A stretch of 64,000 nucleotides of DNA from Anthoceros angustus (taxonomy: Eukaryota; Plantae; Anthocerotophyta): contig MU008190.1 of assembly GCA_010909165.1 (NCBI GenBank), forward strand, positions 124,001 through 188,000, written 5' to 3'. The notes beneath the pieces are model-generated. The model did not search any database. It was not told the DNA's origin and saw only the letters and a list, made by a program, of their open reading frames with translations. Shown here piece by piece: positions 9,031 to 52,137 of the stretch. Each line of letters starts with the position of its first letter. Within the stretch, counting starts at the first letter, position 1. Both the position numbers and the translations under genes were made by a program.

Positions 9031-9779
9031 GTAGCGCGGTGCATGCCGACCTTACGCCTCCTTACTGCGGCCTTACGCGCGCGTACTACGGCCTTCGCCG
9101 CGCGGTCAGGCGTGAACCTGCGGCCCCAGCTCGGTCTGGCGGTGCATGCCGACCTCCACTCGGGGCCGTCCGTGGCGCCGCCTGTCGTCCTCACGGCTCA
9201 ACTTCTAAGTTACTTTCCTGGCGTACTTATCACCTTGGACTGGGTGGGTCCGGACTTATCCGTTACCCGGCGTAGTCCGGTGCACCGCCATAGTAGGTCA
9301 GTCGTTGCCACTCCGGTCGGAGTATACTCCGGTGCGGTCCGGTGCTATCCGTGCTTATTCCTCCCTTTTCCGCCTTATTTTATCCTCCGCTCCTACGAAA
9401 AAAAACAAAACCCTAGTTATTTCTTAACCCCCAAGGGAAGTCCGTAGTCCACAGGGGTTCCCTTCGCTCTCGCTCTCCTGCCACGCCTCTGATCCGAGCG
9501 ATTCTCCCCCAAAACCTCCACCTCGCTGTCACTGCCCGCAGTTTCTTCGCGTCTTCCCATGGGCGTCGAGCGTCTATAGGCCCTATGTTATTCCGCTCTT
9601 CATCATTTGGGCAGCCACCGTGCTCCTCCTCACGCCACAGCCTCGCTTCGCTCATTTCCTCGATCACCACTTGGGGGTAGGCCCCGCTCCCGTTCGGAAG
9701 AACCAGTAGCGCGTGGCGGTCAAGATGTGCGGCCGATATAGTTTACGCCCCTCACTGTCCCAACAACCACATATACATT

Positions 9780-45700: not shown

Positions 45701-47872
45701 AAAGGCTACAGATGAACTGAGCAAATAAAATAACATTTACCCCTCCTTTGGCTGTTTGTTTTGCACTGGGGAAGTCCAGAGTTGCCTCTCCTGTGAAGAC
45801 ATTGAGATAGAATACAGACACTTCCCTGCAGACAACCATCAAACCTTGAGTGTCCTTTCTCATTGTCTGGCAAAGCCTAAAGTATCTTCAAAACGTTAGT
45901 TTCAGGCAGTAAGGAGGAGGAGTCTACTTGTCAGCCAAAGAATAGGATTCCCAACAAGGATGTAATGTCTCTGCAGCCTGCTCAGAAGCGGCTCCAGTCT
46001 CTCTTCTGGTCATCCAACAGAGTGCTTGTTTCTGGTAGGGCCATAGAGAGCACAGCATGGCACTGGAAGGCTCCATCTCCTGCTAACAAGTCAGATGAGA
46101 TACATATGCAGCTTGCTAATGGCCAACAATCTAAAGTGTTGAAGTGCTACATTGCCTGGCAGCAATACATATAACAAACTACATTGCAGTGGAAACAGCA
46201 CCTGCATTTCAGAGTTATCAGTTGAACCAACAAGATCGCTGATTTCATTGTCTGAAATCTCTTCAACTCCACCTTCACTTGCAGGAACACCTGTTGCTAG
46301 CTTGCGCCGTTTTTCTGCAGTTAATGAGCTACTTTCCTGTTCATGAACGCAACAGTGTCATTGTGGGAGCACCGAACGACCATACGCAGATGAAGAAGTG
46401 TGTTGAGACAGGCCAAAAAAAGTACCTGAAGAATTTGCTTATCAGACTCTAGGGAGCGCTTTCGGGATAGCACATCCTGTGGTGTGAATTCTGCCTACCA
46501 GACAGGAACAAGTACTTTCAGACCTTCATATGCCTCTCAGGTACAAAAAAAAGTCAACTCGGGCAAACTAAAACACCCACCTTCTGGGACGGTTTACGCC
46601 CAAGAAATGACAGAAGGGATGGCAGTGGGAGATTCGTTGTTGCTTCAGTGTTGACAGAAATGACATTCCTCCACAAACTATCAAACTTTGAAAAAAAGTT
46701 GCGATTTACGTACACTCTGCAGGAAAAGCACAACAAATGTGAAGAGAGGATGGTTCGGAATGTACTTCCACTCTTGTTAAGGATACAGCCAGAAAATTTA
46801 CCGGATATCAATATAGATAGTGGACATCATTTCCAATAAAGCAGGAGCACTCCTGCACCTTCCCACGAGCTTAACTCTATTCTGATGTACCAAGGGAATG
46901 ACACAGGCTGCCCAATCCCTAGGAAGACGACCAACCTGCAACAGAGAACCACGTGAGCAAGGTCTACGTAACACGCATTCCCAGAAGTTCATATCTGGCC
47001 GAAACTGTTAGACTGACCTCTCCATGAATGGGGGATCCAAAACGTACGATTCCAGCTCCTGCAGATCCCTTTGGTTTACCCCATGGACGTTTTCCGTCAC
47101 TGGAGGCTGTCCAGTTCGGTTTCTTTGGGTACGTAAAGATGATAGGATCTCCTCTCTCCACTCTCATTCCTCTACAAGTAGACATCCCAGCTACCTCTGT
47201 TTGGCCCAGCAACAACCACTCACTTGGGACTTTTTCCAATGGTTGGGACCCCAGGGGTCTTGATTCCAGATCAATCCGCAGTATGCCTTTAGTCAAATTG
47301 GGAATCCCCTTCCGTGAGATTTGAGTGGGAACATTGGTAACACCTGTAACCACCTGCTTCTCCATAAGCTGAACATCCTCAGATTGTTCTGACGAAGGTA
47401 CTTCGTCTTCTGACAATCGGGGAGACACACAAACATCAGGCTCACTGACTGGAGCCACAACCTCAGCAGCCACCACCTCAGGCCTGCTGACTGGAGCCAC
47501 CACCTGAACTGGCCGCGAAGGAACTTGCCCTCTAGCTTGCCCATCCCTGACTACAGGAGGGACCCCAACCTGGGATCCACTGATGGCACTCACTTCAGGC
47601 TTTACAAGCACGTCCCGTTTTAGGCTAGCCGTGTGCGGTATCGGGGCAGGTACCGGTGCCGGTGCTGGTGCTGATGCGAGTGGCGGTCTCTTGACCACAG
47701 GGATTGGTCTGGCAATAGCTTCTCCTTGCGGAGTATCGAAGTATATGTTAATAGCCGACAAGACATTCTCCCTAGCTAAGTAGAGGGAATGAATCATATG
47801 CTTCTCCGAGGCGTCAGGCCCTATCACTGCACGCATCTCCCTCAGAGCATTCTCACGCTCTAATTTAGCCAT
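42745..47872 (-). CDS. RAD5: RAD5-type SNF2 helicase / RING E3 ligase (HIRAN-SNF2_N-RING-helicase C), multi-exon
   Basis: [16 protein letters not shown]|VGRLPRDWA; [20 protein letters not shown]; [16 protein letters not shown]; [26 protein letters not shown]; [17 protein letters not shown]; [10 protein letters not shown]; C-terminus [10 protein letters not shown]. Confidence 0.95.
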
Positions 47873-48180
47873 GTCGCCACTCACGCTACCCACCAAGCAA
47901 CATTACAGTCAGTAGAATTCCAACATCCACCTGGCTTCTTCAAATTCTGCATACGAGCTGGAGCACAACCCATAGCGAGGCGGACGTAGAACTCACCGCA
48001 GATGCAGCTACCCAGAAATCCGTGCCTTCTTGGCAATGCTACCAATCCTCAAGCTCTCATCGCGCGGCTGGAACAAACCAAGAGACAAGCACAAGGGACT
48101 CCACTTTATTGCGCACATTCTGCAGACCGAGACTGGCTATTGTCCAGCTTCAGTCCGATGTCCTGGATTTGCACAGATCT

Positions 48181-48188
48181 AAACCCTA
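48181..48188 (+). promoter_or_regulatory. Telo-box AAACCCTA (second copy at 48471-48478) in the RAD5/rpl5 divergent intergenic region
   Basis: Exact AAACCCTA at 48181 and 48471, upstream of a ribosomal protein gene. Telo-boxes are established elements of plant translation-gene promoters. Confidence 0.55.
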
Positions 48189-48523
48189 GACGCCTTGAAT
48201 ACGCGAAGGCGCCAGATCATATTTGCCAGGAATGAGCGGGAAGTCACTTGAACCTCTCCTGCGAGGTTTCCCACATTATTGCCGCCTTCCTGACTTACGG
48301 ATACTGACTCATGGTTAGTTGCTTACATTTCGGGCACGCAGCAACAGGACGAACGGGAGCGCTTTGAGATGTTTTTCTCTCGAATCAAGCAGCCTTGGAG
48401 CACCTTGCGATTGGAGCTTCGAAGCGAATTCTTCCGTGTGCGTTTTCAGGAACCAACCATCTGACTCTCCAAACCCTAACCTGGCTGAGACGGAGCAGCT
48501 GGGACGCTTCCCAGCTGCCCGGA

Positions 48524-49246
48524 ATGTCGTTTGTGCGATGCGGTTGGGTTGCATCCAGGATGGGGCGGTATCTATTGGATCCTGGGGGCGGGGCATCTGT
48601 GGCTGGCAGATTGCCGTGGTGGAAATCTGGGGCGATCAGGGGGTTTGCGAGCGAGTCTGAGACGGTCCCTGCAGCCGGGACAGTTGCACCAGGAGTTGCG
48701 CTTTTTCCTCCCAACAGATTGCGGTTCCACTATGAAAATGTGCTCAGGAACGACCTGCTGGCGAAATTCGACTACAACAACGTCATGGAGGTCCCTCGGG
48801 TGACGGCAGTGGTGGTGGTGCCAAGGGCTCCTCTGGATTCGGAGAAGGCCGCCCGAGTGGCTTTGGAAGTTGTGTGCGGCCAGAAGTTCCTGCCTATCAA
48901 GAGCAAGGATCCTGCATTGAAGGTTCGGCGGAGCAAGTATGAGCCGAAGAGGAATCTGAGGAAGGTTATCCCTGTGGCTCGCACCACCTTGCGGGGGGAT
49001 CTGATGTACAATTTTCTGGAGAAGCTTGTGTCGGTCACGTCCTTTCACGACTACTCTTCTAACATACAGAATCACTGTGTCCAGCTGAGGTTGGGGTCGC
49101 AATTGCTGCGCTTGTTTCCGGAGATCCTTAACCATATTGAGATGTTTGACCAGATTCGGGGTGTGAATGTGACTGTTGTCACTAGTGCTAGAACACGGGA
49201 GGAGGCTGCCAGTTTGTGGAGTGGCTTTCTGCACAGGGAGAAGTGA
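48524..49246 (+). CDS. rpl5: Nucleus-encoded mitochondrial-type ribosomal protein L5 (uL5m) with an N-terminal targeting extension; intronless
   Basis: LRFHYENVLRNDLLAKFDYNNVMEVP and IRGVNVTVVTSARTREEAASLWSGFL match land-plant mitochondrial Rpl5 ([24 protein letters not shown]...IRGFNVTIVTSA...LWSGFL). A ~65-aa extension contains IRGF-AS, an R-x-F cleavage-like motif. Confidence 0.92.
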   Translation: MSFVRCGWVASRMGRYLLDPGGGASVAGRLPWWKSGAIRGFASESETVPAAGTVAPGVALFPPNRLRFHYENVLRNDLLAKFDYNNVMEVPRVTAVVVVPRAPLDSEKAARVALEVVCGQKFLPIKSKDPALKVRRSKYEPKRNLRKVIPVARTTLRGDLMYNFLEKLVSVTSFHDYSSNIQNHCVQLRLGSQLLRLFPEILNHIEMFDQIRGVNVTVVTSARTREEAASLWSGFLHREK

Positions 49247-50571
49247 CCCGGAGCTCTGCTTCAGTTGGACTGGAGCAAGGGCTTTGTGGCTCCGCCATTT
49301 TGTCTCCTGCCTTGTTGCACTCCGAGAATGGGAGAGGCTGTTAGCAGTGTCAAGAGCATGCAATGCTGTCATTGCTGGGTCAAATGACTGTCTACAATTA
49401 CTTCATGCTTGCTCTCCTTCTCATGGAGCAATTTAGGTCGACGGGCTTTTCAGGAGGTAGGCTACCTAATTCGAGATGCAGGAGGATGGTGGGCCTATCG
49501 TTCTGCAGTTTCACATTCTTCGCACTGCCAGGGGCCATTGTGTCTGAGTGAGGGCTACGTCCTTTCCCTCGTAGGGCTCCGTGTAGGGCTCCGTAGGTCT
49601 TAATTTGGCAAGAACTTTCAAGTTCTCGACCTTGCACTGACTTGGGGCTCTGCAATTCGGACTGTTCACTCTCGGTTAAAGGCTTTTGAAGGTCTCCCAT
49701 TTCCAAAACTGTCTCACGGAACAGTCTTTTGTGCGTCCTTAAATACATCTACCGTCTTCCCTAAAAGAGAACTACATCTAGCGATTCACGGGCCCCAGGA
49801 CACGAGTTCGCGTGGTTCACGAAGGTAACAGCCCAGTTCACGGGTGGCAGCAGCACGCCGGTGCTGGCAGGAAAGTGTTATGAGCAGGACAGTTTCCAAA
49901 CAGGTGCCGTTGCAACTTTCTTCTGCATCAAAATTGTGACCACATACACATGTAGCCTGCTCGATCCGCTGTGAAAAGTTGGCAGGAGACAAGGGTTCCG
50001 TTCAGATACTGTTTAGTTCAGTCAGCTTGCTCTGTAACGGTTCACTGGACCTGACGCTGAACTCATATGGATGTAGTGCGAGCATGCATTATGCGCTGCG
50101 GTCGTCCGCATGTTACTGCAATGCAGCCGGTTCGGGAACTGACAGAGACTGTATGATCCTAGTCATACCGAGTCTGTCTCGGCAGTCTCTTCCACGGAGT
50201 GCACTGGAGATGTGCCTGGAAGAATCGTTCGTCACATCATATCATTCGCAAAAAATGCACATTAAGCTGCAAAGAGTTGGTACTTTAAAAACTCAACTGA
50301 GCTAACAGCAATTCCAAGTTGAGGTCCACCTGAGGGATTTTACACCAAAGCATGCAGCTAGGACGAGGACTGATTGAACCACATTAAGATCTGAGATTTG
50401 TAGCAAAACAGCAGGAAAATCAGGTTGCACTAGCTTAGGTGTTCGCTCGCAACATCATAGCTAGTACAACCTGAACAGCCTACCAGCTTCTACACATGAG
50501 AATAACAGAACAGGAAAGACACCACTGTCTACAAGCAGCCAGTGTCCAGGGCGAGAAATCCCCGAGCCCAT

Positions 50572-52137
50572 TTACCTACTGACTGGCAACTTCGCGTCCT
50601 TCCTGAGTGCGTTAGCTCTCACGAGACTGGCAATGGTGTTGAATGCCAACTTGATGTCATCGATGGGGTTCCCGGGCACGACGGTCTTGTACAGGTAGCT
50701 GTCGAAGGTCATCTTCTGCACATAGTCATCTGCACACATTTCGACAAAGGCCTCCCTAGCAGGGTTGGACCTGTAGAACACTTTCTGAAGAATATCCAGA
50801 ACCTTGTATGTTGGCCAGTAGGTCTTGTCCCACTTGTCAAGGTACACTCGGAGGTCGGCCTCGTTGATCAACCTCTGGCCATTTTCAGAGCCTTGCGCTA
50901 TGGCCTCGGCACACATGCGGCCAGACTTGGCAGCAAAGTAGATGCCCTCACCAGAGCACTTGGTCACATAGCCAGCAGCATCTCCAATGAGAGCGACACG
51001 CCCCTTCACACGGCGTGGCCTAGGGTGCTCGGGAATAGGATGTGCCTCCACTCGGATGATCTTACCCCCGGCGATCTTGTCCTTCGCCCTGTTACGCGTG
51101 GCCGTCTGGTACTTCTTGATGGCAGGCTTGTTGATGACAGTCCCAGTGCCAACAGCAACGTGGTCACACTTCGGAAACACCCAGCCGTAGAAGTCCGGTG
51201 ACACATCGTCGCCCACATACATCTCAGCCAGGTTCTCGTAGTACTCCATCTTATCAGCAGGAATCTTAATCCTCTCCTGAAAGGCAATGGCGTAGTCATA
51301 CTCACCGGCATCGATTTCCTTGGCCACACGACTGTTCGCACCATCAGCCCCGATGACAGCGTCCACCTCCAGGATGCAAGGCTCCCCCTGCTTTCCAGCT
51401 ACTCCATCATACTTGGAGTAATGCAGCCGGTAAGGGCTGATGTCATCCTTCGGCACCTCCATACTCAGGAACAAGCCGTTGATCACATTAGCACCGTACT
51501 TGGCCGCCCGGTCTCTGAGATAGGAGTCCAGCACCTCTCGCCTCACCATGCCGATGTATTCGTTCTCGTTTAAAGTCCTTCCGACATCCACCGCCACATT
51601 CGAAGGCGAGATCATCTTCATCTTGGTCACCTTGCGGTCGATGATTTCCGGCGGCAGGTCGAATTCTGCCACCATGCACAGCGGAATGGCACCTCCACAG
51701 GGCTTGGCATTGTCCAACTTCCGCTCGATAAGGAATGTCTCAATGCCGTTCTTGGCCAGCGTTTCAGCCGCGCAGCCCCCGCCCGGCCCGCCTCCGATCA
51801 CAGCCACGCGCAGCTTCCTCCCATCCAGCTTCTTGCTATTCCTCCCAGCGTACACGGTGAATGTTGTCATCACCCGATCCCCCTCCACGGCCGCACTCCG
51901 CCTCTGCAGACTCTCCACACTCCCGAACACTGAGGCTGCGACGGAGCCAGCGCGGAGGCCATCGAAGCTCCTCAACCTCTGCTTGGAGGAACCGGCATTG
52001 GCCAACTTCCCTGCTTGCGCATGCAGCAGCCCCGGCGCAGCCAGGCACACCTCGCCTCCAGACTTGACACTCCTGGAGGACTCCAATCCCGCAGAGAGCG
52101 CCGTCCCAAGGGAACGCAGAGGAAGGACGGCGGCCAT
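50572..52137 (-). CDS. CHLP: Geranylgeranyl diphosphate reductase, chloroplastic; intronless, 521 aa
   Basis: LRVAVIGGGPGGGCAAETLA FAD site; KPCGGAIPLCM; GEYDYAIAFQER; FYGWVFPKCDHVAVGTG; GDAAGYVTKCSGEGIYFAAKSG; N-terminal transit peptide. Confidence 0.98.
   Translation of the reverse strand: MAAVLPLRSLGTALSAGLESSRSVKSGGEVCLAAPGLLHAQAGKLANAGSSKQRLRSFDGLRAGSVAASVFGSVESLQRRSAAVEGDRVMTTFTVYAGRNSKKLDGRKLRVAVIGGGPGGGCAAETLAKNGIETFLIERKLDNAKPCGGAIPLCMVAEFDLPPEIIDRKVTKMKMISPSNVAVDVGRTLNENEYIGMVRREVLDSYLRDRAAKYGANVINGLFLSMEVPKDDISPYRLHYSKYDGVAGKQGEPCILEVDAVIGADGANSRVAKEIDAGEYDYAIAFQERIKIPADKMEYYENLAEMYVGDDVSPDFYGWVFPKCDHVAVGTGTVINKPAIKKYQTATRNRAKDKIAGGKIIRVEAHPIPEHPRPRRVKGRVALIGDAAGYVTKCSGEGIYFAAKSGRMCAEAIAQGSENGQRLINEADLRVYLDKWDKTYWPTYKVLDILQKVFYRSNPAREAFVEMCADDYVQKMTFDSYLYKTVVPGNPIDDIKLAFNTIASLVRANALRKDAKLPVSR

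Follow-up and report, generated by a model that had tools for sequence, protein, structure and literature searches.

An intronless nuclear gene for a mitochondrial-type ribosomal protein L5 (uL5m) in the hornwort Anthoceros angustus

Moves of organelle genes into the nucleus are long familiar, and grass rpl5 is one case among many. In Arabidopsis uL5m is organelle-encoded. The grass nuclear rpl5 genes (uL5m; P0020-P0036, e.g. Lolium perenne) encode mitochondrial-type L5 proteins to which an N-terminal leader has been added, and the gene described here is of the same kind. In mosses and liverworts, such as Andreaea rothii (P0002) and Riccia cavernosa (P0005), rpl5 lies in a mitogenome cluster of the rps3-rpl16-rpl5 type, as at the mitochondrial locus L003 with its AT-rich codons (GC3 around 0.33). 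Among hornwort mitogenomes, rpl5 is absent in Leiosporoceros, Phaeoceros and Anthoceros angustus and a pseudogene in Nothoceros (PMC6082510, Table 2), in agreement with an earlier note on the present DNA that had pointed to losses of ribosomal protein genes from hornwort mitogenomes. According to a survey, only rpl10 and rps13 of these genes are retained in hornworts (bioRxiv 2022.12.23.521604). With just two ribosomal protein genes left in the organelle, nuclear replacements must exist. Our literature search returned no description of a hornwort nuclear rpl5; its coverage was incomplete and such a gene may have been reported.

The DNA analysed here, called the window, is a 64-kb stretch of the Anthoceros angustus genome. 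ORF calling and translation give, at 48524-49246 on the plus strand, a reading frame that is uninterrupted from ATG to TGA (240 codons plus the stop). We annotate it as the complete intronless coding sequence of nuclear rpl5, encoding a uL5m precursor of 240 aa, on the basis of the ORF itself, the Pfam and NCBIfam L5 models, the match to a solved uL5m and a colinear transcript-like contig. Very probably this is a functional nuclear uL5m gene derived from mitochondrial rpl5, which moved in an ancestor common to this hornwort and at least one distant relative. The earlier note, written from the letters of this DNA, had already claimed an intact intronless rpl5 ORF. This claim holds: the frame is open throughout, and a contig of the source organism that is 100% identical to the genome is colinear with it. 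The part homologous to mitochondrial Rpl5 extends from Leu60 to Lys240 (48701-49243, plus strand), as delimited by alignments with mitochondrial Rpl5 and with the ortholog P0001 presented below.

The C-terminal domain of the L5 family (Pfam Ribosomal_L5_C, PF00673) is recognized at residues 153-235 with 37.4 bits (E 2.8e-9), exceeding the gathering cut-off of 27.8, and the L5 N-domain (PF00281) matches weakly, with 15 bits versus a cut-off of 34.9. The NCBIfam model for bacterial L5 (NF000585) aligns with residues 65-233 (E 2.5e-18); its score of 66.4 bits is under the curated equivalog cut-off of 186 bits, which is expected because the protein is a diverged organellar one. When all solved structures are searched with phmmer, the best match is uL5m of the plant mitoribosome, that of Arabidopsis (PDB 6xyw chain Ae; E 5.7e-37, 130.6 bits), window residues 66-239 aligning on residues 4-180 of the 185 in this chain. 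Unlike the window protein, this best solved relative is without leader. Bacterial L5 proteins score at most 66 bits (E around 1e-17) and chloroplast uL5c at most 58 bits (E 1e-14 to 5e-11), and no cytosolic uL5 was matched among the solved-structure results. The sequence match to a solved uL5m settles the fold. The closest named relatives found by word search are the mitochondrially encoded rpl5 products of mosses and liverworts, with 50-54% identity and the C-terminal 75% of the query covered. The same range of identity applies to P0002 and P0005 over the 181-aa homologous part, where 30 columns are invariant in all 8 aligned sequences, including the window protein. The moss and liverwort proteins differ from it in having no leader, with their Met start where the window protein has Leu60, and in having five residues of an internal loop that the window copy lacks.

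A maximum-likelihood tree of 40 sequences (LG+C20) places the protein with its ortholog P0001 in a clade with support 100/100 and a stem of 0.7 substitutions per site, compared with terminal branches of 0.01-0.08 for most organelle rpl5 copies. Relative to algal mitochondrial rpl5, this clade is inside the land-plant group, as sister to all other land-plant copies (90/87), a placement not to be over-read in its exact position because of the long stem. Such a gene tree had been proposed as a check; together with the word and structure searches it assigns the protein to mitochondrial rpl5 rather than to a plastid or cytosolic L5. Its position inside streptophyte mitochondrial rpl5 and the best match to 6xyw_Ae support the earlier description of the product as a mitochondrial-type Rpl5. 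A plastid or cytosolic L5 identity is ruled out by the structure-search scores and the tree. Nuclear uL5m of grasses forms a clade in another part of the tree, nested among seed-plant-like mitochondrial rpl5 sequences. Constraining all nuclear copies into one clade costs 58.8 log-likelihood units (AU p 6e-7), and a single origin shared with the grass nuclear rpl5 is therefore rejected. The transfer seen in the window is independent of the grass transfer. The two cases resemble each other in that both proteins evolve faster than the organelle copies and in that both leaders end with R-x-F followed by Ser or Ala. The leaders themselves are unrelated in sequence and differ in length, around 90 aa in grasses versus 59 aa here.

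Residues at RNA-editing sites had also been proposed for comparison. At seven candidate C-to-U sites in the mitochondrial rpl5 of another lineage, the window protein has the conserved residue in five cases and the unedited residue in none, a result which fits the transfer but does not discriminate because the comparison copy is not a hornwort mitochondrial rpl5. The mitochondrial contigs used here, L003 (309-3263) and L005 (223-1292), carry rps3-rpl16-orf48-rpl5, the order on L003 being rps3-rpl16-rpl5. Where Leu and Tyr are conserved, their rpl5 encodes Ser, Pro and His, a pattern that C-to-U editing would be expected to correct; its frame also stays open for 9 codons upstream of the usual Met.

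The ortholog P0001 (248 aa, Logan run SRR33208241) was found by word search as a full-length match to the window protein, N-terminus included. On its locus, the 3.96-kb contig L001, rpl5 again lacks introns and has a PPR gene downstream, which makes that copy nuclear as well. In a pairwise alignment the mature parts of the two proteins are 73% identical, the N-terminal extensions 34%. Both lack the same five residues of the internal loop. Both also have Leu at the position of the start Met of the mitochondrial copies, which means that the extension comprises 59 aa and was fused directly onto the old start. The Nei-Gojobori omega between the window gene and L001 is 0.11 for the mature part and 0.15 overall, with a dS around 1.6 that is saturated. 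The gene has been under purifying selection since the transfer. Synteny between the window and L001 was not found: the PPR gene, not CHLP, is downstream on L001, and the 409 upstream bases give no RAD5A signal. Similarly, rpl5 was not found beside CHLP at L002, the CHLP locus of the relative that has P0001.

The 59-aa extension can be divided into two parts. Residues 1-41 (48524-48646, plus strand) form a predicted mitochondrial presequence, judged from composition and helical moment, with six R/K and a single acidic residue (Asp); only four of the 41 residues are Ser or Thr. Residues 42-59 (48647-48700, plus strand) constitute a linker which, by alignment, has no counterpart in mitochondrially encoded Rpl5. 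At the junction, R39-G-F-A-S43 (48638-48652, plus strand) is a candidate cleavage motif for the mitochondrial processing peptidase (MPP). Plant presequences of the -3R class have the motif R-x-F/Y/L|S/A. From this rule, cleavage would take place after Phe41. The motif R-G-F|A-S is identical in P0001 despite the divergence of the leader elsewhere, and the alignment shows R-A-F-S-S at the matching place of Lolium nuclear uL5m, which was transferred independently. The earlier note had proposed a new N-terminus of around 65 aa with an R-x-F|AS motif; the extension is real and the motif is present at residues 39-43, and the length has to be corrected to 59 aa. The leader runs into the mature part without an intervening intron, and no donor gene for it is recognisable. 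Most simply, upstream DNA would have been recruited de novo to form it.

The genomic surroundings of rpl5 are those of a nuclear gene. On one side, 650 nt upstream and head to head with rpl5, there is a spliced RAD5A-like gene with a UBA_RAD5A domain (47016-48300, minus strand; ATG at 47872, first exon above 47997), identified by Pfam and by the splicing of a contig. A 111-nt GT..AG intron in its 5' UTR (47886-47996, minus strand) is removed in the transcript-like contig. On the other side, tail to tail with rpl5, the CHLP gene for geranylgeranyl reductase, known from homology and its ORF, is a single exon of 521 codons (50572-52137, minus strand). The CHLP protein is 77-81% identical to moss, liverwort, fern and Selaginella proteins and 84% identical to its nearest relative, which comes from the same run as P0001. 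A CHLP tree unites these two copies (100/98) and keeps them apart from mosses, liverworts, the lycophyte-fern-seed plant group and zygnematophytes; a hornwort fits this position best, on a single gene and with an unresolved backbone. The flanking ORFs of rpl5 showed no Pfam family and no mitochondrial neighbour genes, and no significant match to mitochondrial rps3 or rpl16 was obtained within the 64-kb window. As for codon usage, GC3 in the homologous part of rpl5 is 0.68, close to the 0.71 of the nuclear neighbour CHLP and far from the 0.32-0.34 of mitochondrial rpl5 (L003, L005). Both the location among nuclear genes and the GC-rich, nuclear-style codons noticed earlier are thereby confirmed. 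On the opposite strand, an antisense ORF of 266 aa crosses rpl5 (48572-49372, minus strand). L001 has only a 95-aa antisense ORF, and the long one, not being conserved there, is probably a by-product of GC-rich coding DNA.

These data bear on whether the locus could be a NUMT, that is, dead mitochondrial DNA in the nucleus with a frame that is open by chance. The gene is intronless, like a raw organelle insert, and the window protein was not found in the protein collection searched and may be unannotated. Yet the identity in DNA with the mitochondrial loci L003/L005 is 72% over just 131 nt, with a GC3 of 0.68 rather than their 0.32-0.34 and without mitochondrial genes in the flanks. The low omega with respect to the ortholog, even with a saturated dS, the open frame in both species, the N-terminal extension common to the two orthologs, and the transcript-like contigs of four organisms, with indels outside the coding sequence only, all argue in the same direction. 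We consider a NUMT hardly credible and reject it on nuclear context, omega and GC3. What had been proposed at first sight, an old functional transfer rather than a NUMT, is in line with these three results and with the transcript-like contigs.

Transcript-like contigs cover rpl5 in the source organism and in three relatives, whose contigs are 90-95% identical. The runs from which they come are taken as RNA by inference, and the splicing in the source contig points that way. The source contig, X1, is 100% identical to the genome and colinear over 47997-49722, which shows that neither the coding sequence nor the UTRs of rpl5 contain an intron. After 49722 there is a gap in coverage up to CHLP, which is covered from 50279 on at around 14 times the depth of the rpl5 contig in the same run. 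The 3' UTR is thus annotated to the end of the source contig (49247-49722, plus strand). In the relatives it has a 29-nt indel at 49458; the only other indel is of 1 nt at 48442, in the 5' leader, and none is found in the coding sequence. That the locus might be untranscribed, which would have spoken against the proposal, is not what these contigs of four organisms indicate.

Beyond 47997, X1 joins exon 2 of the RAD5A-like gene via the minus-strand GT..AG intron. The RNA over the ORF could then belong to the RAD5A-like gene alone, as a lengthy 5' exon or as antisense transcription upstream of it, rpl5 itself being silent, and because of this junction the source contig does not fix the strand and the transcript ends of rpl5. 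However, in the three relatives rpl5 forms separate contigs of 1.2-1.35 kb, which extend from around 48300 to around 49680 and are 2-2.5 times as deep as the RAD5A contigs. Overlapping head-to-head transcripts are merged by unstranded assemblers, and since rpl5 is separate in these relatives we read the run-on of X1 as an artefact of this kind. As X1 joins the two genes, their divergent transcripts probably have at least one assembler word in common at the 5' ends. Moreover, constraint on the plus-strand frame implies that a plus-strand mRNA is translated, and the antisense ORF is not kept in L001. A silent rpl5 under a RAD5A transcript is therefore very improbable, though marginally less so than a NUMT.

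For a transcribed and translated rpl5, the 5' leader is placed at 48300-48523 (plus strand). Its start is approximate: contigs of the relatives begin at 48350 and 48376, and one has 50 more letters upstream. Two upstream ATGs are present in this leader, at 48311 (18 codons) and 48369 (31 codons), within 48311-48464 on the plus strand; they belong to the mRNA only if transcription starts far enough upstream. The 18-codon upstream ORF is in frame with the main ORF and closed by TGA, and the 31-codon one is in another frame.

A motif scan of the leader detects a telo-box, AAACCCTA, at 48471-48478 (plus strand), 46-53 nt upstream of the ATG. A second telo-box core lies at 48181-48188 (plus strand), in the interval common to rpl5 and the divergent RAD5A-like gene. 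In total the window has five cores versus 1.47 expected, the three others being at 9408, 29979 and 34243. The only telo-box of L001 is at nearly the same place, 49-56 nt upstream of the ATG. Two relatives (B and D) have G at 48473, hence the exact motif is not universal. An enrichment of telo-boxes has been reported for nuclear genes that encode mitochondrial or cytosolic ribosomal proteins, and not for those of the chloroplast ribosome (PMC3212954). With its telo-box some 50 nt ahead of the ATG, rpl5 may be transcribed in concert with other ribosomal protein genes.

The destination of the protein deserves the same scrutiny. In plants, the leader of an organelle protein often does not point clearly to one compartment, and a protein of mitochondrial origin could now serve the plastid ribosome or, by dual targeting, both organelles. 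Such retargeting is unlikely here, if less remote than the two alternatives discussed above. The leader ends in R-G-F|A-S, a -3R motif typical of plant mitochondrial presequences that is kept in the ortholog, and is poor in Ser and Thr. The upstream telo-box belongs to the type that marks mitochondrial rather than chloroplast ribosomal protein genes. Land plants also have a separate nuclear uL5c of cyanobacterial type (chains of PDB 5mmi and 6eri). We retain a nuclear uL5m gene whose product would serve mitochondria. It would be expressed as an mRNA of around 1.4 kb and translated in the cytosol. The basic 41-residue leader would direct the precursor into mitochondria and be cut off after R-G-F. 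The mature protein would then join the central protuberance of the mitoribosome, replacing the lost organelle-encoded copy.

The locus is in this sense an example of the replacements that hornworts must have, with an intronless copy in nuclear codon usage, a home-grown leader that carries a conserved processing motif, and a promoter element of ribosomal-protein type. It confirms what was expected from the content of hornwort mitogenomes and overturns nothing. Being independent of the grass rpl5 transfer, it provides a clean case in which to compare the ways that targeting and regulation are acquired once an organelle gene has been relocated. We may tentatively go further and propose that the transfer took place in the common ancestor of living hornworts, that the leader was created de novo out of the sequence directly preceding the former start codon (now Leu), with neither an intron nor a donor gene involved, and that the telo-box was recruited early and has been held since; this scenario as a whole is possible, with the odds rather against it. 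If true, nuclear genes that encode mitochondrial ribosomal proteins would have been under telo-box control as far back as the base of land plants. A last observation concerns the ortholog locus. Around 220 nt upstream of the ATG, L001 contains a near-perfect palindrome of around 70 bp (118-190), with GC-rich arms and a short centre, which may be a small inverted-repeat element.
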